DNA of 64,000 bases, from sequence record OR529409.1; one strand, given 5' to 3'. The notes beneath the pieces were generated by a model. The model had not been told where the DNA came from and did no database searches. It was given only the letters and a program-made list of their open reading frames with translations. Below, piece after piece: positions 4,349 to 52,459 of this stretch; the first letter of the stretch is position 1; the number at the start of each line of letters is the position of its first letter. The position numbers were made by a program, and so were the translations under genes.

Positions 4349-4842
4349 AATCAACTCCCACACTGAGTTTCGGGACTGGAGGAATTTCCGTCTCGATAAA
4401 AATTCAACTGAGAATTTTTACTCTGGGGTTTCGGCGGTTATAATATTTCACTGCGGGAATTTAAAAACTCAACGGGTTTACGATCCCGTATGTTTTTGAG
4501 TTTTATTTCCCGTATAAAATACTCCGTGCCGTAAGACAACACCCCACAGAAAAAACCTCGCCTCCGGAAAAAATTCCTCGAAGGCGAGTTGCCATGATCT
4601 CACTCGAGCAAGAATCAATCCGACATACAATCCCAAGCGCTCCGAAATTTTTTTCTTCGGAATTTTGGTCATTGGTAAATTTTTACATACAAATCTATTT
4701 TATATTTGTATTTTTCGCTTGCGCGGATATTCTAATTTTTCAAAGATAATCTAAAACCGATTCCGGTTCTGGGTTTTTTATTTTTCTGTGTTTTGATTTT
4801 CCAAATCCAATTTTCAAAAATCTAAATCTAAAAATCTAAAAA

Positions 4843-5217
4843 ATTTAATACTCAAAAATCGATTTTTGCTAGGGGTCCTTATTACGCGTGCGTACGCCCG
4901 CACGCATATAAAAAATAAATATAATACGTAGTATTATATTTTCCTTTGGTTTTATATTTTTAATTTATTAAAAATATATTAATATAAATTATTATAAATA
5001 TTTTTTATTAGTTTGTTTTTATAAAAAATATATAAATATATATTTATATATATTTATATTCATTAGGCGCGCGCCAGCGTGCGTGTGTGTACGTGCGCGC
5101 ACGCGTAATAGAGAAGGGGTTATAAAAATACAAGATTGGCCCTGAGAGATTATCCAGAAAAAATCACACAGAGTAAAAATATTAACCGGAATGATTTTGA
5201 GAAGATTTAATACTCAA
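4843..5217. other. origin-like element: near-pure AT core flanked by inverted and direct repeats
   Basis: 13-bp IR TATTACGCGTGCG 4880-4892 / CGCACGCGTAATA 5098-5110; about 155-bp almost all-AT core 4907-5065; 13-bp direct repeat ATTTAATACTCAA at 4843-4855 and 5205-5217. Function inferred. Confidence 0.5.
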
Positions 5218-5452
5218 CCTAGGAATTCGTATCAGTCGGATGAAAAAACGTTTTAGAAATCGATACAGGAATTTTTAGAGGGTGTTCTGATCGAGTTCTC
5301 AGGAAGGATTATTCACTGAATAAAAATATTTTAATCAAGATAATTAATTTTTACCGCAAGTTAGATTTATCGAGACAAGAAGATTTAACCGCAAAGTAAT
5401 ATCTTACGGAGAGCATAATCTTCTGAGCAGGACAGAGATCTCGAATTGTCAG

Positions 5453-7650: not shown

Positions 7651-7691
7651 TTAATTATGTCAGAACTAGATTTTTTCAGTTCTAAATTATG
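7651..7691 (+). promoter_or_regulatory. tandem candidate phage-RNAP promoters upstream of phuZ
   Basis: TTAATTATG 7651-7659 and TAAATTATG 7683-7691; the same 9-mer is at 36397-36405; the TATG core resembles the phiKZ nvRNAP late-promoter start motif. Confidence 0.4.
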
Positions 7692-7757: not shown

Positions 7758-8720
7758 ATGAGTACATTACGTGTTTACGCGTGCGGCGGTACTGGTATTA
7801 ATATCGCGTCTAAATGGATTGCCACCGGTGCGAATACGCTTATTCGTAAAGCCCAGTTCATCGGACTGGATAGCAGTGAAAACAACAAACCGTATAATGA
7901 CGCCTTTAAGGTCGAACGTCCTGAAGGAACTCGTGGCGGCGGTAAGGAACGTAAGCTGATCGGTAAAATTGCCGCCGGGTTTATTGACAGTATTTTGACC
8001 AAACATAAACCGGGCGATTTCAACCTGATCATCATGAACGCGGCAGGCGCTACCGGGAGTACGTTCGGCCCGACTCTGATCAATCGTCTCCTCTCCCAGG
8101 GGGTCCCTGTCATCGCCCTGGTCGTAGGCGACCTGACCTCGGAACTGGAAAACTACAACACAGTTAAAACGTTTGAAAGCCTGGACAACCAGCGCATCAA
8201 TCTGAACGTACCGGTTATCATCGACTACGTGGACAACGCCAAATATCCCAGCCGCGGATTGGCCGACAAATACGCCATCGGCCGTCTTGATATCCTGAGC
8301 CTGTTCTTAACCGACGAACATGAAGAAAGTGATTTCCAAGACATCCGGAACCTGTTCTATTACAACCAGGTTACCAAGGCGGCACCTACTCTTGCTCGTA
8401 TCGACTTCTTGACCGATACTCAGTTAGACAACGTTACTCCAGGCCTGGTTGCTGAATTTGGTTTGTATCGTAAAGCGGACGACATCGGCAGCCATATTAA
8501 AAATCTGGCATACCGTTCGACCGGCGTTATTCAGGAAGGTAGCACTAACTTCCCGGCTGGAATAGAACATCTCCACATGGTCTTTGATCATGATGCGACG
8601 ATCAAAGATATCCTGGTTCTGGTTCAGGATCTTAAAGATATCGAGATCCAAAATAACGAACGTTTTAAATCTGCCCAGCAGGTTGGAAACGGCGGTGATG
8701 ATTCCGGAATGTCCTACTAA
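7758..8720 (+). CDS. phuZ: PhuZ phage tubulin
   Basis: RVYACGGTGINI N-terminal tubulin/FtsZ motif, GTRGGGK, T4-loop-like AAGATGSTFGP; 320 aa; jumbo-phage context. Confidence 0.93.
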   Translation: MSTLRVYACGGTGINIASKWIATGANTLIRKAQFIGLDSSENNKPYNDAFKVERPEGTRGGGKERKLIGKIAAGFIDSILTKHKPGDFNLIIMNAAGATGSTFGPTLINRLLSQGVPVIALVVGDLTSELENYNTVKTFESLDNQRINLNVPVIIDYVDNAKYPSRGLADKYAIGRLDILSLFLTDEHEESDFQDIRNLFYYNQVTKAAPTLARIDFLTDTQLDNVTPGLVAEFGLYRKADDIGSHIKNLAYRSTGVIQEGSTNFPAGIEHLHMVFDHDATIKDILVLVQDLKDIEIQNNERFKSAQQVGNGGDDSGMSY

Positions 8721-15777: not shown

Positions 15778-15922
15778 TGTAGTCCTGTTAGTAACTCAGT
15801 ATTATGTTATTACATATATCTATTATATGTAAACAAACACACCTCTCCGAAAGGAGGGGAGACCAATGCCGCGGAGTAAAAATCCGTTAAGCATAAAATC
15901 GATCAGTTTTTACCACCCCTAA

Positions 15923-15959
15923 ATAATTTCAGACCGATATTATTTAGGTAGATAAACAA
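15923..15959 (+). promoter_or_regulatory. candidate early (virion-RNAP) promoter of chimallin
   Basis: ATAATT-N8-ATATTAT-N3-GGT-N2-ATAAACAA; same layout at 21148-21184; ATATTAT resembles the phiKZ early promoter TATATTAC. Confidence 0.6.
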
Positions 15960-16036
15960 CACAAATGTTTATCTGTTTTGATCAAACTTAATAACATCCC
16001 CCTTTATAAAAAGCTAATAGCTATTAGGAGTTAAGA

Positions 16037-18049
16037 ATGTCCGACAATCAAAATGGCAACAACTGGGAACAAACCGTCCTGAACACCGCTGCTGGTAAAG
16101 GAGAGCCGATCGTCTCTGCTTCTGCCGAGAATTTCGGTTCTCAGCTGCTCGGTCTGCTCGGCCAGGCTTCTCTTCTGGGTTCTTCCAAGAACGTGCCGGA
16201 AGTAGAAGAAACCGCGGCTCTGATCAAGAAACGCGTAACCGATCTGAAAAACGGTACGCCGGGCGAAACCCAGAAGAAGATCCTGCCGGAAGTGAACATC
16301 ATCACCAAACCGATCATCTCTGCACTGCCGGGCATCGTGCTCTCCCTGCACATGAACAACAACCCTGCGGTATACGTCATGCCGGTGCTGTTCTCTAACC
16401 GTCATCTGACCAATACCCTGGAAGAGATCCAGATCGACAACGGCGTTAACCAACAGCGCAAAATGTCCATGCCGTTTACCCCGGATTCCTACGCTCGTGC
16501 TGATCTGTTCGAACAGATCAAAATGCACTACAAAGCGATGCTCCAGGATAAAGGTGTGAGCGAATGCGTGATCATCAACGTGATGGTTATCGACCTGGAA
16601 CAGATCGTTGGTGACGATGTTCTGAATCAGGGCAAATCGCCGCTGCTGCGTGATGAAATCATGCGTAGCTGGGAACAGGGTCTGATGGTACAGATCGCGA
16701 AAATCGCAGCCAACCAGCCGAAAGCTTCTCTGCCTTCTCCGTTCTCTGCGACCGGTGGCAAAGCCTATGGCCAGCACGGTAATGCGATTGCTCGCGTTGA
16801 ACCGATCCGCGGTCAGTATGTTAACGAAGGCCTGCTGTCTCCGGCGAACCTGACCATCCGCATGCAAACTGCTAACCATAACGGTTATCAGGGTAACGCG
16901 GAACAGTCCCGTGAAATCGTCAACACCTACGCGACCGTTAGCCTGATGGGTTCTCCGATCCAGCAGTTCAACCCGCAGCTGACCGGTAACATTCCGCAGC
17001 CGTACCTGCAGACCCCTAACGGTCGTCCTCAGGGCTACACCCCGCTGCAGCCGGTGGTTATTATGAACCACGCTAAAGCTGGCGAAGTGCTGGGCGATGC
17101 GACTGGCCTGTCGACCTACTTCATGGGTCTGTTCTCTCTGATGGCGACCAACAGCAACTACCTGTTTGCTGAAGCTCTGCGTTCTAAGAACGTAGGTTCT
17201 CGTGGCTCCCTGACTGATATGGAACACCGCATCCGTCAGATGGAAAATGGATTACCTCCGCGCACTAAGGGTACTGAGATGACCGACGCTAAACTGTCGG
17301 ATATCGATTTCACCACTAACTGGATTCGCGCCAATATTGGACCTAAAGCAGTCTTTGCTGCTGACCTGATCCAGTTCGGCCCGGATGCGGCAATCTCCAA
17401 CTTCCTGTTCAACCTCACCTCCGGTGCGAAAGACTACAGCAAATGCGTGAAAACCGTTATTGCTATCGTCGATTCCATCTCCGGTGATGCGAAAGCCATG
17501 TCTGCGGTTATCGCAGAAAACCAGGCCAACAACAATGGTAACGGCGGATGGATTCCAGGTAAACCGGTACTGCACGTTTCTAACGCGCTGATCCCGGTCG
17601 GTACTGCTGTACTGGATAACAAACGCATTGCGCTCGGCGAAGTGGACGAGATGTTCCTGTCCAAGCACTACAAAGATCAGATCACCCCGATGAACCAGTA
17701 CCTGGAAAACATGTACGGGTCTAACCCGAACGTGCCGGAAAAACTGCGTCGCTACAATCTGTTGATCCAGCTGTCCACCATCTTCTCTGAAGGTGTAAAC
17801 CTGTTCGGCTTCGCTCGTCGTTGCTACTGGGATCCGCTGTTCATGGATGCGTTCACTAAAGCGATGAACACCATCGGTTCTCTGCAGGTTACTGGCTCTA
17901 TGGGTCAGTTCGCTGCTAACGTTCAGGTCTTCGCTCCTGGCCAGCAGTATATCTCTCAGGCAACTGCTGGTAACTCCGGTGGCGTCGTTCTGGGTAACGG
18001 TATGATGCTGGGTGCAGGCGGCGGTCTGGTGTTTGGCCCGTCCTACTAA
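16037..18049 (+). CDS. chmA: chimallin, major phage nuclear shell protein
   Basis: 670 aa, very strong highly-expressed codon bias, immediately upstream of nvRNAP beta' as in phiKZ gp54-gp55; AGGAG RBS; own terminator. Confidence 0.85.
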   Translation: MSDNQNGNNWEQTVLNTAAGKGEPIVSASAENFGSQLLGLLGQASLLGSSKNVPEVEETAALIKKRVTDLKNGTPGETQKKILPEVNIITKPIISALPGIVLSLHMNNNPAVYVMPVLFSNRHLTNTLEEIQIDNGVNQQRKMSMPFTPDSYARADLFEQIKMHYKAMLQDKGVSECVIINVMVIDLEQIVGDDVLNQGKSPLLRDEIMRSWEQGLMVQIAKIAANQPKASLPSPFSATGGKAYGQHGNAIARVEPIRGQYVNEGLLSPANLTIRMQTANHNGYQGNAEQSREIVNTYATVSLMGSPIQQFNPQLTGNIPQPYLQTPNGRPQGYTPLQPVVIMNHAKAGEVLGDATGLSTYFMGLFSLMATNSNYLFAEALRSKNVGSRGSLTDMEHRIRQMENGLPPRTKGTEMTDAKLSDIDFTTNWIRANIGPKAVFAADLIQFGPDAAISNFLFNLTSGAKDYSKCVKTVIAIVDSISGDAKAMSAVIAENQANNNGNGGWIPGKPVLHVSNALIPVGTAVLDNKRIALGEVDEMFLSKHYKDQITPMNQYLENMYGSNPNVPEKLRRYNLLIQLSTIFSEGVNLFGFARRCYWDPLFMDAFTKAMNTIGSLQVTGSMGQFAANVQVFAPGQQYISQATAGNSGGVVLGNGMMLGAGGGLVFGPSY

Positions 18050-21136: not shown

Positions 21137-21147
21137 TTGACATGCAG

Positions 21148-21184
21148 ATAATTATACATCGATATTATCATGGTGTATAAACAA
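21148..21184 (+). promoter_or_regulatory. candidate early promoter matching the chimallin promoter
   Basis: ATAATT 21148-21153, N8, ATATTAT 21162-21168, N3, GGT, N2, ATAAACAA 21177-21184; TTGACA also present at 21138. Confidence 0.6.
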
Positions 21185-21213
21185 ATGAATATTTTATTTA
21201 TAAGGAATCTATT

Positions 21214-21339
21214 ATGTCAATCATCGCCTCTATCGCCATCGTTGTTATTATCACCGCAGTAGTTTACGTGCTCACCAAAGATGCCGTGGAAGAAATCTTC
21301 CCGGTGCGTAAAGAAATGGCTGTTCGTAACAAACGTTAA
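21214..21339 (+). CDS. 41-aa single-pass membrane microprotein (not in the ORF track)
   Basis: MSIIASIAIVVIITAVVYVLTKDAVEEIFPVRKEMAVRNKR; TAAGGA RBS; own promoter and terminator; highly-expressed-type codons. Confidence 0.8.
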   Translation: MSIIASIAIVVIITAVVYVLTKDAVEEIFPVRKEMAVRNKR

Positions 21340-21349
21340 TTTATTGTTA

Positions 21350-21396
21350 CTCCCCTCCGAAAGGAGGGGAGCCTAACCGCGATTATTTTTTTTTTT
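21350..21396 (+). terminator. terminator after the microprotein gene
   Basis: CTCCCCTCC-GAAA-GGAGGGGAG hairpin; long T tract shortly downstream. Confidence 0.7.
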
Positions 21397-21397
21397 C

Positions 21398-21805
21398 ATG
21401 AGGTTCATGATGACCGGATTTTGCGTTGCAACAATGTCGACGTTGGGCTTTATAGCCGATGACGTTAAACTCGCTATGGACAGACATCTCACTTATTGGT
21501 TTGCATCCAGACGCGATCAAAATAAGTTAATAGGTGAAGTCGATTCCTTTGAATATCTTCTGATGACCTACCAAGGTAATCGGAGCGCTTTGGTCAGTAA
21601 TGTCGAAAGCTCACTCAGGACTTACTTCCAGCAGATTTTCAGTACCGTAGAAGTTCAAGTGTCCGATTCCGATATGCCGGGTGAAACAGAAAACTTTACA
21701 CTGGTCATGGCGCTTAGGGTGACACACGAAGGCGTCCCTTATGACCTTCAAAATGCCGTTATCGTATCCGGCGCTTCTTATACTCTTCTTCCGAGAGGTA
21801 ACTAA
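21398..21805 (+). CDS. conserved hypothetical protein (start may be 21407 or 21410)
   Basis: ORF leading the nuclease operon. Confidence 0.6.
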   Translation: MRFMMTGFCVATMSTLGFIADDVKLAMDRHLTYWFASRRDQNKLIGEVDSFEYLLMTYQGNRSALVSNVESSLRTYFQQIFSTVEVQVSDSDMPGETENFTLVMALRVTHEGVPYDLQNAVIVSGASYTLLPRGN

Positions 21806-25338: not shown

Positions 25339-25372
25339 ATAATTTTTTAGCACTATATTATTTACTGGTAAA
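25339..25372 (+). promoter_or_regulatory. candidate early promoter
   Basis: ATAATT-N10-ATATTAT; TATATTAT at 25354-25361. Confidence 0.45.
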
Positions 25373-25404: not shown

Positions 25405-26991
25405 GTGGAATTTAAACTCAGTTTAAAACAGAGTGGGAAAAGTCCATTTGCTGGAGTTATTGCGCAATATGGCGAAAGCATTATCGAGTTCAAAGGCAGT
25501 GGCAGATTAAATTGTGGTACGATTTACGATGATCTTTTCTTTTCTTTTAACGAATACGTCGGGCATTTAGAAGAAAAGAATAAGGCCCGTTTATGGGAAC
25601 TAATGGTTGCGGGTAAGACCATTTTGGATCCTTCTTATTTCGACATTGATAACGTCGACGAAGAACTGATGTTGAACAACCGGGATTATAATTTCCTCGT
25701 TAAGAAACTCAAGCCCATCGTCGCTGAAATCTTCGATGTGTTGAAAATGAAGAACTACGAGTACTTCATGGAACAGTCCGGGTATATCGATCCACCTAAA
25801 GATCTTACCTCGATGTCTGGTCTTGGAGAGTATCCGGCCGAGACAACTATCACCGCCGAAGATTATCGTAATCTGGCGGCGTTGGTTTTAGGTTTACGCG
25901 GTCCACTCCCCATCATCACCGAGATGATTTATAAAGTCGAGAGCATCGCTGGTAAAGCATATAAGGAAGTCGTAGCTGGAGATCTGATAAACGATATCGA
26001 GTGGGTCAAGCAACACGTCGGCTGGAATCGTTTAAACGAGTATATCTCTTTTACTTATAGTGCGAAGGGAAGGGGACCTAATGGGCTGAGAATAGATATC
26101 GTCAGTGACGATCGGTTCACTACTCATGTCGTCTATAAGGCGTTGTTCGGGCGTTTATGTTTAAGTCACGTGCCCAGCAAAGATCCACGAAAGAATTTGG
26201 TTAAATCGCTTTATTCCATCGTCAACCAATCCGACAAAGTTCCTAGTAGTGTAAGGGAAAAGAAAGGAGGGGGTAAAGACGAGAGTAATGATAGAAGGAG
26301 TTCTTACGAGATCTATCAGTTGCGAGAAGAAGTGAACGCAACCGATGAAGCGGCTGTGGCCGAGTTCTTTACTTTCGGTATGTTTGATGAAGATGACAAT
26401 CCGATTTATAAAGATCGATTCGTACATCAGTGTAACGGTTTGAACATAGCTGATCCTAACAAAGCAGAAATTCTACATGATCTTCTGCCGGATAACTGGG
26501 ATTATGAACCGAGACAGCATATCGTTAAATTGTGTCAGATGGCTTTCTCTGACGACATTCCTTTTAACATTTATTATGCGTTGGATTATCATCAATTGAT
26601 GTCGGCCATTGTTTTGGCTCAGTTAAAGCTACATCAAATGGGATATCCTCACCTCGCGGTATTGTTAACGTCAGTTGAGGATCCTGAAGGTGAGCGAATC
26701 AACGCAGACGTAATCTTCTCTTTAAACCAAACAGAACGTCAACGTATCGAATCGTTATGTGATGTAGTTAAAGGAGACGGGGCCACATCAACTAATAACG
26801 AAGCAGTATCAGCGGCACTTGAGTTCTTTAAGGAACTCGGTAACAGTGCTTGGCAGTCAACCATAGAGCTTGGTCTTATCGATGACGATAAAGCTTTAGA
26901 AAGTGCACCACGCGGTTTTTTATACGAAGTCAATTTGGATATTCAGATTAAAGAAGAGTTCATTCGTCTTTATGAAGAAATCAACAGTTAA
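25405..26991 (+). CDS. non-virion RNAP sigma-like specificity subunit (phiKZ gp68-like)
   Basis: 528 aa, GTG start with GGGAG RBS; size and position between ChmC-like and PicA-like genes (synteny inference). Confidence 0.65.
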   Translation: MEFKLSLKQSGKSPFAGVIAQYGESIIEFKGSGRLNCGTIYDDLFFSFNEYVGHLEEKNKARLWELMVAGKTILDPSYFDIDNVDEELMLNNRDYNFLVKKLKPIVAEIFDVLKMKNYEYFMEQSGYIDPPKDLTSMSGLGEYPAETTITAEDYRNLAALVLGLRGPLPIITEMIYKVESIAGKAYKEVVAGDLINDIEWVKQHVGWNRLNEYISFTYSAKGRGPNGLRIDIVSDDRFTTHVVYKALFGRLCLSHVPSKDPRKNLVKSLYSIVNQSDKVPSSVREKKGGGKDESNDRRSSYEIYQLREEVNATDEAAVAEFFTFGMFDEDDNPIYKDRFVHQCNGLNIADPNKAEILHDLLPDNWDYEPRQHIVKLCQMAFSDDIPFNIYYALDYHQLMSAIVLAQLKLHQMGYPHLAVLLTSVEDPEGERINADVIFSLNQTERQRIESLCDVVKGDGATSTNNEAVSAALEFFKELGNSAWQSTIELGLIDDDKALESAPRGFLYEVNLDIQIKEEFIRLYEEINS

Positions 26992-30666: not shown

Positions 30667-30741
30667 AAGCTAACTCCTTTAAGACCTATATCATCGCGAT
30701 GTACCACAACTTTAGGAATAACAACGATAGAGGCACGTTTC

Positions 30742-32853
30742 ATGGTAGAAAAATTTGTCTATAAGAAACCCACAAACCAGCTTAAACCAGAGTTGATGTC
30801 CATCAATATTAACTTGAACTCATTTCCCTGGTCGGTTTCATCGTCACGTCAATATATGTTGGGTGGTAACGTAGCTAAAGCAGTTTCCATACAAGGCGCG
30901 TCGACAAGGCGTAACCCCGTTGGATTCGAACCAGAATATGCTAAGTACGCTCGTAAAGTCATAGCGCCGTCAAACATGACTGTAGAGAGAACATTTTATC
31001 AGCGATCTCTACAACCCGGTAGCAATCTTGCAGATGATTGGGCGGAGATCCACGTTATCTTCTTTAATGAAGAACACCAGCTTTATGATCTCTTGACCAT
31101 TCCACGATTTAATACGCAGAATACTTACGTTGGGTTTGAGTACAAACTTAACAAGGATAACCTTCGTAAACTCAGTACAGAATCACCGACCTTTAAGAAA
31201 GGTGATGTGTTTGCGTATTCTCCAAATATCAGCGATACTGGAGAGTGGATGTTTGGTACTGAGGCGATGGTTTGTGGGATGACCGCACCTTATACCGAAG
31301 AAGACGGCATTGCTATTACTGAGAGCTTTGCTCGTAAGCTGACCAGCATCTTCCAACATTCTCGTAAGTTCTCCTGGAACGAAGCAGAGTACGTGCCGCT
31401 GAATCTTTATGGAACATTAGATTCTCCACGGCCTTTCCCTGAGAACGGAGAAAGTATTCGTAGTGACGGTATTGTCATGGGGTTCCGTAGACGTGACACT
31501 TCGAGCGCTCTGGTGGGCTTAACCAAAAAAGCACTCATGCGTCCTGATCAAACTTACGATATTCTTTTCTACGCGCCTAAAGATTGCGTTGTTAAAAATA
31601 TCTCCGTCAAGTCAGATCGTTATAAGAACGTTTCCAATAACAAACGTCAGGAGAAGATTACTCAGCCTCACACTCAGTTGCTGGAACGTTATGAGCAGCG
31701 TTCTAACCAAATGGCGTTTGAGGTCCAGGAGTGGTATTACCGGATGGATGCGAAGTTTAAAGATTCCGATCTTCCTTTCACCCATGCACTCCAAGAGTTC
31801 ATCTCTAAACAGTTAGGCGACGTCACTAAAAACTTCGCTACCGGCAAGTATAACCAGGTCAAGCGAACCCACCGCAATAAGGCGCTTTTGGATTGGAACG
31901 TCGAGATTACTTTAAAGGAAAGAGTCACTGCGCGTAAACGTTTTAAAATTACCGACACTCAAGGTGCAAAAGGCGTAATCGTTCACATTATACCCGATGC
32001 TAACGCACCGCGATACGCCGATGGACGTCGATCAGAAGTCATCATTAATAACACTCCTGCTTTTAGACGCCAGATCTTTTCGGCGTTAATAGAAGCTGGG
32101 GTTAACTTAATAGGCTTGGAGATCGAAAACAGGATCAGAGTTCTAGTTGCTCAAAACGGAGGGTATAAGAAAGCTTATCAGGAGCTCATTAAGTTTTATC
32201 GTTCTACCGCTCCGGAGTTCGCCGATATCGTTGATGCCGCTCTCCCCACGGAAGAAGAACAATTCGATCACGTTGACTTTGTGTTGAGTGATAAGATCTG
32301 CGTTCAACGTCGAAGCGACACCCAGCTGTATGGCGCCGATATTCTGAGATTGATGCGGGAAACCTATCCGGATATCAAACCTCAAAAGGCAATTTACGTT
32401 AACGAGCTCGGTCAGGAAATCACCACCATGTTCCCTGTCAGTATCAGCAGCATGTATTACATCCTGCTTGATAAGTTTGGTAACGATATGAGTTGCCAGT
32501 CATTCCCTAAGCGTAACGTGTACGGCCTGCCGTCTAAGTTGAACCATGGCGATCGTTATAGGGATTGGCACCGTGCTCAACCAGGCCGTAATATGGGTGA
32601 GGCAGAATCACGTCAGAAGAATACTCAGATGGGGGGAGAGGAAGTTGTAAGGCAGTTGGCGGCAGCTAACTCCCCTTACGTTTGTATCATGATGACGAAG
32701 CGTATTATTCGGGCTAATAACCCGTTTCGAATTAAAACCATTATTAAACCTGAAGAGTATGCGATGAGCCGATCTTTGGGAATGACGATGAATTTACTTA
32801 ACGACGCGGGTTATACTTTACGTAAGGAAAAAGACAGTGATCTTACTTCGTGA
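30742..32853 (+). CDS. non-virion RNA polymerase beta C-terminal subunit (phiKZ gp71-73-like)
   Basis: EDGIAI, KITDTQGAKGVI and YYILLDKF beta-like motifs; GEAESR; GAGG RBS. Confidence 0.85.
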   Translation: MVEKFVYKKPTNQLKPELMSININLNSFPWSVSSSRQYMLGGNVAKAVSIQGASTRRNPVGFEPEYAKYARKVIAPSNMTVERTFYQRSLQPGSNLADDWAEIHVIFFNEEHQLYDLLTIPRFNTQNTYVGFEYKLNKDNLRKLSTESPTFKKGDVFAYSPNISDTGEWMFGTEAMVCGMTAPYTEEDGIAITESFARKLTSIFQHSRKFSWNEAEYVPLNLYGTLDSPRPFPENGESIRSDGIVMGFRRRDTSSALVGLTKKALMRPDQTYDILFYAPKDCVVKNISVKSDRYKNVSNNKRQEKITQPHTQLLERYEQRSNQMAFEVQEWYYRMDAKFKDSDLPFTHALQEFISKQLGDVTKNFATGKYNQVKRTHRNKALLDWNVEITLKERVTARKRFKITDTQGAKGVIVHIIPDANAPRYADGRRSEVIINNTPAFRRQIFSALIEAGVNLIGLEIENRIRVLVAQNGGYKKAYQELIKFYRSTAPEFADIVDAALPTEEEQFDHVDFVLSDKICVQRRSDTQLYGADILRLMRETYPDIKPQKAIYVNELGQEITTMFPVSISSMYYILLDKFGNDMSCQSFPKRNVYGLPSKLNHGDRYRDWHRAQPGRNMGEAESRQKNTQMGGEEVVRQLAAANSPYVCIMMTKRIIRANNPFRIKTIIKPEEYAMSRSLGMTMNLLNDAGYTLRKEKDSDLTS

Positions 32854-49543: not shown

Positions 49544-52459
49544 TTAGGATTTATGCAATTTAAAGTTTAAAGTAATATCTTCAGCAATTGTCAACAACGT
49601 GTTATTGTTGTTGTTCAACACTTTACGAATACTGAACCCAGTTGTAGCGTCTTTGTTACTAATGACATCGATGCTAGTAGACCCTGCAAACGATTCCAGT
49701 TTTATATCAACCACATCGTCACCAGAAATATCTTTAAGTGCGGAGATAAGACTGGAGTTAGAAATGGTTGAGTTGGCCAGCATGTTGTTGATAGTCTCAG
49801 GATATGTGTTAGCGAGACTGGTCTGCAACGCGTCCGACTCATACCCATTTTTGGTTAAGTAAACCGTAATGGAGAAACTGAGATCGCTCCTGATCGTCGT
49901 TTCGATATCAGCGTTGATGATGACATCGATATTCCCGATCTTAGCTTTAGGAAGAAACTTGACTTTGGTTTCGTCCAGGCTTCGATTGTTAATCGCTGTC
50001 ATATCTTGCTTGATATTATCGGTCAGATAGGTTTTGGTCGACTCATCGAAATCTTTATCGTACGTATCGGTCGTGAAGAAGTAAGAGCCATCAAACCCTA
50101 AGAAGTCGAAGCTGTACTGCAGCTTCCTAGGTTCAACTTCCACGTTGTTACCGTCGGCGTCTTTAACAAAATCGCCGATGAGATATTTGTACGTCGGATT
50201 ACCTTGAGCATCCAGAATAGGGTCACCTTTCTTATGCAAGAAGATCGGAAGACCATCATTGCCTAAAACCAGTTTCCCTTCGGCATCACGTTGAGGATAA
50301 TCTTTATCATAAGTATCCGGAACGTTGTAAGTGTACTTCTGATAACGCGCGTCGCCAGTGATCGGTCGGATACGAGTGTACATGTAATCGAGGCTCTGCC
50401 CCAGAGTAATGTTCCACTGCGTTTCGATAATCGCTTGCATATCAGCAGAGAAAAGACTAGAGGCGATTTTGTTGTCGCTATCTGATCTGTTCGTTGCATC
50501 ATCAGTAGTTTTTAACAGAAGGAAACTGAATGCGTTAGTCAGACTACTTGGGATATTATTTGCGTCCGCGTCGTACTGAGTTAGGTTGTTAAGATAAAGC
50601 AGATCGTTGTTATCGATGTCAAAGTTGCTCGATAACACAAACTGCCAAATCCTTTCACCGGAACTGTTGACCCCTACCAATTCACCCTTAACAGATGCGA
50701 GCGCTGCTGCGTTAGCTGGGGTGAAACAGAGTTGTGCTCCGACCTCATTATCCTCCAAAGCCTTGTACTCTTTACCAGACTTACAAACAAGAGTAAAGAC
50801 GTAGCCCGTTTTCGTTACGGAGACGTTAATACTTGATACGCCGAGCTCTATCCCCAGGTTGGTGTTCTCGTATAAGAATCTCTGGTAGTTGCCGGTAGGA
50901 GAATCCATCCGGTACATTCTTAACGACGCTTGATTGTCGGTAAGATCCATGACGTAATGGAACGGAGTGTAAACCAACGCATTCCCATTGACATAGTTGG
51001 AAATAGCCTCAAACCCAGAATTCTGGATGGCGGTTAATTCCGTTAAGGGGACTATCCTGGTTGTCGTTTTCGAAATATCGAATACCGTCCTGCTCGGTAT
51101 AGTGATCCGTTCGCCATTGTCAAACACCATTCCTGTCGCTACCAAATCTTCGGCACTTTGCAGAATCGATCCGATGTAGGTGTTCATGCTAGAAACCATC
51201 CCGTCTTTATTAGACTGAGCGGGAAGATCTCTGGACGCCTTGTACAGACGATTGGTGATGTAATCGATAGACAGCACTTCGTCGTAACCACGATCCTCAA
51301 TATTGTAAGAATATTGATTAGGGGTGATCGGCAAACTGTCTCGGCGATTACCGTAGATGGCCGCCCGACGAACACTTTCAAAACTACGAGGATTCGCCCC
51401 ACCCGTTACGGCGTTCACGGTAATCCAGGCTTGGTTATTCGCTTCCAACAACGGCGAGGAGTATACGCCCAATTGGTTGTTGTCGTAATTATAGTCGAGA
51501 TATTCCGGTGTGTGATCCGCAACACTAATCGTTTTAAGATCCTGTTCGTAATAACCGACTGTCGTATAAACGTACAACGCGATCTTACCTACGCCCAACC
51601 CACTCGTTATGTAAGCAACCGGAACTTCATAGGTAAACGAACCGTTATCATTATCCAGGGAGATGACCAAAGTCGGTACAGTCGTATCGAAGTTGGCTTT
51701 GTTGTAGCTAATAGCCATCTCGGCAGTACTGCCGTCTGAATAAGTGATAAAGGCACGGATGGCGTAAAGATAGTTACTGAAATAAAAGGTGTCTTTAGCC
51801 AAGCCGGAGGCTGCCGTTGTCGCGATATTGAACTTAGGTGTGTTGTTCAATTGACGAACAGGAACGAGGATGCGGAGGAACTTAACGTTGCTGATAACAA
51901 CGTAGTCGGTATCCAGTACGTTCTCTGAAATTGGATTGAGCGGATTGTTGACAGTTGAATCATAAACAACGCTATGGCCGCCATGTTCCATTAAACGAAT
52001 TTCGAAACCGTTTTCAATACTGAAGTAAGTGGAGTTAACCAGAATTCGAGTATCTTTAGGAACCAGTAGTTTCCGATATTTGTTTACTACCGCGCCATCT
52101 TCTTCCTGGTATTCGACAGCCAGACGTTTTATCTCACTCACCGGAATAAGATAAGCCATCGTTGTACTGCTAGGGACCCCGAGCAAACCGTACCATTCTT
52201 CATCAGATAGGTTACGGCTGAGATCAGACATGTTCCTCGCCTGGTTTTTATACATCTGAGCAGCTGCGTCACTATGACGACTCAGCAAAGTATATGCCTC
52301 GCCCACGATCATATCCATAGCTGTGATAAATGGATGCGTGGGGCTGTTAAAGGCGATGTTTTTACCTGACCATGCTTCTTCGATCATGGAGAGTACATTA
52401 GGAATAACTCGAGTGGGGTTATTCGATATTTTTTCTAAGTCGGAGTAGGAATAACTCAT
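49544..52459 (-). CDS. large virion structural protein, likely baseplate wedge (phiKZ gp87-like)
   Basis: 971 aa; VTGGANPRSFESVRRAAI resembles baseplate J/gp6-type motifs; synteny. Confidence 0.65.
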   Translation of the reverse strand: MSYSYSDLEKISNNPTRVIPNVLSMIEEAWSGKNIAFNSPTHPFITAMDMIVGEAYTLLSRHSDAAAQMYKNQARNMSDLSRNLSDEEWYGLLGVPSSTTMAYLIPVSEIKRLAVEYQEEDGAVVNKYRKLLVPKDTRILVNSTYFSIENGFEIRLMEHGGHSVVYDSTVNNPLNPISENVLDTDYVVISNVKFLRILVPVRQLNNTPKFNIATTAASGLAKDTFYFSNYLYAIRAFITYSDGSTAEMAISYNKANFDTTVPTLVISLDNDNGSFTYEVPVAYITSGLGVGKIALYVYTTVGYYEQDLKTISVADHTPEYLDYNYDNNQLGVYSSPLLEANNQAWITVNAVTGGANPRSFESVRRAAIYGNRRDSLPITPNQYSYNIEDRGYDEVLSIDYITNRLYKASRDLPAQSNKDGMVSSMNTYIGSILQSAEDLVATGMVFDNGERITIPSRTVFDISKTTTRIVPLTELTAIQNSGFEAISNYVNGNALVYTPFHYVMDLTDNQASLRMYRMDSPTGNYQRFLYENTNLGIELGVSSINVSVTKTGYVFTLVCKSGKEYKALEDNEVGAQLCFTPANAAALASVKGELVGVNSSGERIWQFVLSSNFDIDNNDLLYLNNLTQYDADANNIPSSLTNAFSFLLLKTTDDATNRSDSDNKIASSLFSADMQAIIETQWNITLGQSLDYMYTRIRPITGDARYQKYTYNVPDTYDKDYPQRDAEGKLVLGNDGLPIFLHKKGDPILDAQGNPTYKYLIGDFVKDADGNNVEVEPRKLQYSFDFLGFDGSYFFTTDTYDKDFDESTKTYLTDNIKQDMTAINNRSLDETKVKFLPKAKIGNIDVIINADIETTIRSDLSFSITVYLTKNGYESDALQTSLANTYPETINNMLANSTISNSSLISALKDISGDDVVDIKLESFAGSTSIDVISNKDATTGFSIRKVLNNNNNTLLTIAEDITLNFKLHKS

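Follow-up and report, generated by a model that had tools for sequence, protein, structure and literature searches.

A candidate early membrane microprotein gene in a recurrent genomic slot of chimalliviruses

The stretch of DNA analysed here (the window) comprises 64,000 nucleotides, corresponding to bases 186001–250000 of record OR529409.1, phage BUCTxx100. Between positions 21137 and 21396 it contains a small unit that is best read, with a probability of roughly 60%, as a moron-like early cassette; its gene would be accessory and would encode an inner-membrane microprotein with its N-terminus outside, its C-terminus inside and a conserved peptide at the cytoplasmic end. According to this reading, the virion RNA polymerase would recognise 21137–21175 and initiate at about G21175, and transcription would end at a hairpin followed by eleven T residues, yielding a monocistronic mRNA of about 215 nt. 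Host ribosomes would translate the 41-residue protein, which would insert into the inner membrane, leaving a single N-terminal residue outside and a tail of 20 residues on the inner side. A helix with one conserved face would provide the anchor, and the end peptide containing Ala36 and Asn39 would serve early in infection as a docking point for a partner on the cytoplasmic side of the membrane. The nucleus-forming core would not include this gene.

BUCTxx100 is a Miami-like chimallivirus. The window matches the record of this Stenotrophomonas phage at 100% identity; for Miami-group phages of Klebsiella and Raoultella the identity is 93–99%. The 670-residue product of the gene at 16037–18049 is chimallin (phrog_4795 match, E = 1.6e-100), which identifies BUCTxx100 as a nucleus-forming jumbo phage. 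The named host is Stenotrophomonas maltophilia, yet the region compared is 98.8% identical to Klebsiella phage YC1; the chimallin has 100% identity to its counterpart in Klebsiella phage KPN8.

The microprotein gene and its terminator

The open reading frame (ORF) at 21214–21339 on the plus strand starts with ATG, stops with TAA and encodes 41 residues, as the initial annotation had proposed. The good ribosome-binding site also claimed there is AAGGA at 21202–21206, 7 nt 5' of the ATG. The ORF is not new to public annotation: GenBank OR529409.1 already lists it as hypothetical protein WPH68805.1, and it is also annotated in the records of five related phages. The predicted 5' untranslated region is 39 nt long (21175–21213, plus strand) and includes the AAGGA; from 21172 to the ATG, the sequence is unchanged across all Miami-like alleles without an insertion.

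The insertions are TnpB-only elements of the IS200/IS605 type, encoding 378 residues with OrfB_IS605 and Cas12f1-like domains, and their places differ among Miami-like phages (L002 1254–2390 in phage Miami, L017 351–1487, L018, L008 12365–13501, L030 330–1466 and L031 311–1450). In Miami and two metagenomic contigs the element lies in the 5' region of the microprotein ORF, which is intact and present as two haplotypes. In the phiKp_32 copy, the left end of the element contains an early-type promoter.

Several lines of evidence (the ORF itself, its alleles, an AlphaFold2 model, hydropathy and a family alignment) argue that this is a real, self-contained gene for a small membrane protein. Eleven Miami-like alleles give eight ORF haplotypes; of the 11 variable sites, seven fall on the third base of a codon, and in five codons all changes are synonymous. 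An exhaustive HMMER search returned one diverged homologue (P0006, 62% protein identity), on the metagenomic contig L019. This contig keeps the whole unit, namely the promoter (38/46 identical), the ribosome site, a 40-residue ORF (63% identical), a hairpin with a different stem and a T run, and it has the same downstream gene as the window (75% identity). Between the two homologues, dN/dS is 0.35 overall, 0.13 in the helix and 0.94 in the tail, with synonymous sites near saturation. ORFs in other frames (21170–21262 and 21281–21376) were rejected; they are not conserved in L019. Searches of Pfam, NCBIfam, PADLOC, PDB and PHROG gave no match that names a function.

The unit was also said to have its own terminator, and this holds: a compound hairpin (21337–21385, plus strand) is followed by T11 (21386–21396). 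The hairpin has a folding energy of −21.3 kcal/mol (z = −4.3), with none of 200 shuffles as good; a simple terminator scan missed it. The design of hairpin plus T run, with a different stem, recurs in L019 and in other genera. One and the same G/A-rich hairpin with a GAAA loop is present at only two places in the 252-kb genome, the chimallin leader (15845–15863) and this terminator (21350–21371). In relatives, the terminator loop reads either GAAA or the reverse complement of this, as though the palindrome were flipping.

A short ORF, a terminator at once and then the next gene make up the classic layout of an attenuator, and the stop codon of the microprotein is paired within the outer terminator stem. 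It could hence be asked whether the ORF has a functional product at all, being instead an attenuation leader peptide, or the transcript a small RNA. This is very improbable. The helix residues are under purifying selection, the end peptide is kept across genera, and an Rfam search of the unit found no match. Ribosome-coupled attenuation is ruled out because chimalliviruses separate transcription from translation (PMC12908238).

Predicted structure and topology of the microprotein

The N-terminal hydrophobic helix described initially is borne out. It spans residues 2–21, and its best 19-residue Kyte–Doolittle mean, 2.83, is the highest among the small ORFs of the genome. The AlphaFold2 model has helices at residues 2–28 and 31–40 (pLDDT 80). 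The tail had been called basic, which is correct only in part: with six K/R against four D/E it is mildly basic and of mixed charge, acidic near the membrane and basic at its end. The predicted topology is N-out/C-in in the inner membrane, following the positive-inside rule (zero and six K/R on the two sides). The variable helix positions 11, 15 and 19 share one face, which suggests that the other face may pack against a partner. A docking role for the invariant C-terminal peptide can likewise be envisaged.

Proteins of this build are known in bacteria. The regulatory proteins AcrZ and MgrB and the type I toxins Hok and Fst have 30–50 residues, one helix and a short charged tail; they work by packing of the helix on a membrane partner or by perturbing the membrane. 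The microprotein has no homology to any of them and differs in being phage-encoded and predicted to be early. With regard to type I toxins, the sole antisense promoter-like site is a consensus match not common to L019: a sigma-70-like match on the minus strand (21220–21191) lacks its first hexamer in L019, and such matches are no commoner than in shuffled sequence.

The promoter family and predicted early expression

An exact gapped motif of 37 nt upstream of both chimallin (15923–15959) and the microprotein (21148–21184) had been noted at the outset, and it was recovered here. It is found nowhere else in the window, even with three mismatches, and shuffles gave no matches. Its exact 13-nt tail has three copies in 252 kb, the third lying 5' of a 190-residue ORF outside the window. 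A larger duplication involving the chimallin leader and the microprotein unit was considered and found no support (local alignment score 48.5; shuffle mean 31.8, maximum 55). An exact scan of IMG/VR for this promoter sub-variant returned nothing, and JGI metagenomes gave one Miami-like contig plus chance matches inside unrelated genes.

Both sites belong to a promoter family that was found via words enriched in gene-upstream regions, the rest of the record included; it had escaped a plain count of k-mers across the genome. A position matrix refined over two rounds describes 24 plus-strand sites, and a cut-off of 26 bits leaves 22 plus-strand and no minus-strand matches. The core is a 9-mer, CGATATTAT at the microprotein (21160–21168, plus strand) and chimallin (15935–15943) sites and CTATATTAT in its commonest form; it resembles the mapped early element of phage AR9 (PMC5312081). 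Three columns of the family alignment are fixed in 24/24 sites (A at −14, C at 0, A at +4). TT at −8/−7, which forms a T-rich stretch 5' of the core, A at −4 and T at column 5 are each present in 22/24, A at column 7 in 23/24 and G at +15 in 21/24. An upstream box, TTGACAT at 21137–21143 (plus strand), occupies columns −23 to −17; similar boxes are found at most family sites, as well as in L019, phiKT1028, Yubaba and OBP.

Leave-one-out scores place the microprotein site first in the genome (44 bits) and the chimallin site sixth. In similarity to the microprotein site over 59 aligned columns, the chimallin site ranks only tenth (34/59 identical), the top two sites reaching 40/59 and 39/59. Other matrix matches on the plus strand of the window lie 5' of PhuZ (9-mer at 7682–7690; gene 7758–8720), of a 528-residue gene (25353–25361; 25405–26991) and, more weakly, of an RNA polymerase beta-like gene (30686–30694; 30742–32853). 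Family sites also precede GroEL, an HTH protein and many small unknown ORFs. The suggestion that the microprotein is co-expressed with the nuclear shell is therefore partly upheld: its promoter is of the same kind as that of chimallin, but a special pairing of the two is not supported, as the family has about 24 sites in the genome. A very AT-rich patch at about 5000, within a 1.1-kb region (4364–5452) without an ORF of 90 or more residues, is a weak match to the matrix.

At least five of the first genes behind family sites begin with a signal-like or transmembrane segment, and because of this the phage seems to direct a group of small proteins to the envelope at an early stage. Such first genes outside the window are L009 7038–7253, L009 35681–36025, L008 2095–2553 and L009 38573–38989.

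The region upstream of chimallin (15778–16036) is near-invariant among Miami-like phages, with four changes in 268 nt. Its layout is common to Vibrio phage phiKT1028 (L027 340–580): an initial promoter-like element, a hairpin whose stem differs, a conserved CATAAAATCG stretch and the family promoter. This shared layout suggests that chimallin may have two starts and a structured leader. The first match in phiKT1028 was set aside; the family promoter in question lies at a non-syntenic position.

Mapped early promoters of AR9 end in a heptamer that also ends the window element, with the transcription start 6 nt downstream (PMC5312081, PMC7598289). The same spacing rule has been reported for phiKZ and phiR1-37 (PMC5312081), and, according to the same literature, early motifs of this sort can be found in all phages of the phiKZ-related group (PMC5312081, PMC7598289). 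Applied to the window, the rule predicts a start at G21175, 6 nt 3' of the 9-mer, and a 39-nt leader; this replaces the start at about 21170 that had been assumed. The early promoters of AR9 and phiKZ and the window family are alike in having an AT-rich conserved element of about 10 nt near −10, a T-rich stretch upstream and a conserved start, predicted for the window family, 6 nt downstream, and in lying before dozens of operons (PMC5312081, PMC7598289, PMC8244752). The window family, predicted from sequence, differs in its extra conserved upstream box and its conserved initial transcribed motif. Chimallin of phiKZ has an early primary start (PMC8244752). The microprotein promoter, being of the same kind as that of chimallin, is probably early. 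Activity within the first minutes, independent of host polymerase and of new protein synthesis, would fit the genes that the family precedes (chimallin, PhuZ and the RNA polymerase beta-like gene).

Alternatively, the promoter might be of the host sigma-70 type, as for T4 early genes, rather than of the virion-polymerase type. TTGACA, 18 nt and GATATT at 21137–21166 give a sigma-70 score of 10/12, and a comparable box with the same spacing occurs in many family members. The columns at −14, −8/−7, −4 and +15, which sigma-70 does not read, are nevertheless fixed or nearly so, the chimallin site lacks the upstream box, and three relatives have GATATC, in which the key last T is lost. Moreover, the architecture recurs in Vibrio, Aeromonas, Pseudomonas and Serratia phages, and infection of the phiKZ type is independent of the host polymerase (PMC5312081, PMC7598289). 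A sigma-70 promoter is thus unlikely, and recognition by the virion polymerase is preferred.

A small-protein slot in chimallivirus genomes and its possible functions

The initial annotation regarded the microprotein as stand-alone. This is apt for the unit, which is self-contained, and not for its protein, which is no orphan: a family of small proteins spans many chimallivirus genera. Single-sequence searches had returned only near-identical relatives and the one 62% homologue. The slot is defined by the downstream neighbour at 21410–21805 (plus strand), a phrog_3294 gene annotated as a virion structural protein in relatives, and was examined directly 5' of the orthologues of this gene in other genera. 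It holds single-helix proteins of 40–55 residues in at least eight other chimallivirus groups, including RisingSun gp33, PS2_0055, pEt-SU gp007, Yubaba 02270 and OBP_062. Their C-terminal ends (MAVRNK, MATFNKR, MAVRNSK, MATRNK and AVRNKH, respectively) resemble MAVRNKR of the window. Profile–profile comparison (hhalign) of the Miami group with the other genera gave 95% probability (E = 3e-8), and a profile search found 29 clusters of 40–55 residues on jumbo-phage contigs. A tblastn search of related phages, recommended initially, added N1M2, Sureiya, Kc263, SXP01, AH04, Survivor, AhC3_1 and Joad. Across an alignment of 28 sequences, the start Met, Ala36 and Asn39 are the sole invariant positions.

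Among PHROG models, the microprotein matched none at E = 0.01. The model of phrog_28777, the RisingSun gp33 type, scored 0.0019 for PS2 and 0.067 for Yubaba. Proteins of this type have 40 residues and one N-terminal helix, and share the C-terminal peptide, slot and terminator design with the window; the relation is visible only through profile–profile comparison and synteny. An early-type promoter of like build precedes the slot ORF in PS2, pEt-SU, Yubaba, OBP and Vibrio phages. RisingSun, unlike the window unit, has no private promoter; only 23 nt lie upstream of its slot ORF, with no early-type promoter there. In the Vibrio phages, the slot is filled by an unrelated small protein, phrog_24773, whose helix is C-terminal. 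RAY, an EL-like phage and FishSpeaker have no ORF of 30 or more residues in the slot. They keep only the hairpin and T run, so the terminator looks like the older feature, and promoter plus mini-ORF look like an exchangeable, accessory early cassette.

Some annotations of family members deserve comment. The start of OBP_062 (L038 243–485) seems to be placed too far upstream, overlapping the promoter; the Kc263 homologue (143403–143531) is annotated as photosystem I subunit XII, and the SXP01 homologue (51776–51886) carries no annotation.

As to function, the roles suggested initially (superinfection exclusion, action at the early vesicle, inhibition of host membrane proteins) are conjectures. 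A small protein predicted to reside in the inner membrane, behind an early-type promoter, could in principle be a superinfection-exclusion factor that blocks genome entry by a second phage. The precedent is Imm of phage T4, a small phage-encoded inner-membrane protein that acts early; this 9.3 kDa protein binds the incoming tape-measure protein (bioRxiv 10.64898/2026.03.06.709160). The microprotein is about half as large as Imm, which has several helices and a known partner, and the two show no sequence similarity. The microprotein has a single helix and exposes almost nothing to the periplasm, and searches of PHROGs, Pfam, NCBIfam and PDB gave no relation to Imm or to a named exclusion protein. 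An Imm-like role is accordingly doubtful.

Less probable again is an action on the membrane of the early infection vesicle around the injected genome. The microprotein is a predicted early chimallivirus gene kept over several genera, and the vesicle channels are unidentified, according to reviews (PMC12908238). Against this, it would be made only after the vesicle exists, the slot lacks an ORF of 30 or more residues in RAY, the EL-like phage and FishSpeaker, and the phages that served as models for describing the vesicle are absent from those named by the profile search. The accessory early cassette with a docking end peptide remains the preferred reading.

The results define a promoter family for Miami-like phages, with the microprotein unit as its best-scoring member. 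They also group 'hypothetical' mini-ORFs, dispersed among at least nine phage groups, as a single family that keeps to one slot and conserves its end peptide. Synteny can find such small families, which single-sequence searches miss. The microprotein itself is a concrete and very small candidate for studies of expression, localisation and structure. Nucleus-forming phages start infection inside a lipid vesicle, and their small early proteins have barely been studied. A bolder and much more speculative proposal is that the microprotein is an early membrane factor specific to chimalliviruses, whose end peptide might tether a phage or host component at the vesicle-to-nucleus stage, or close the cell to a second genome. 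If true, it would be the first phage-encoded membrane component assigned to the vesicle-to-nucleus stage.
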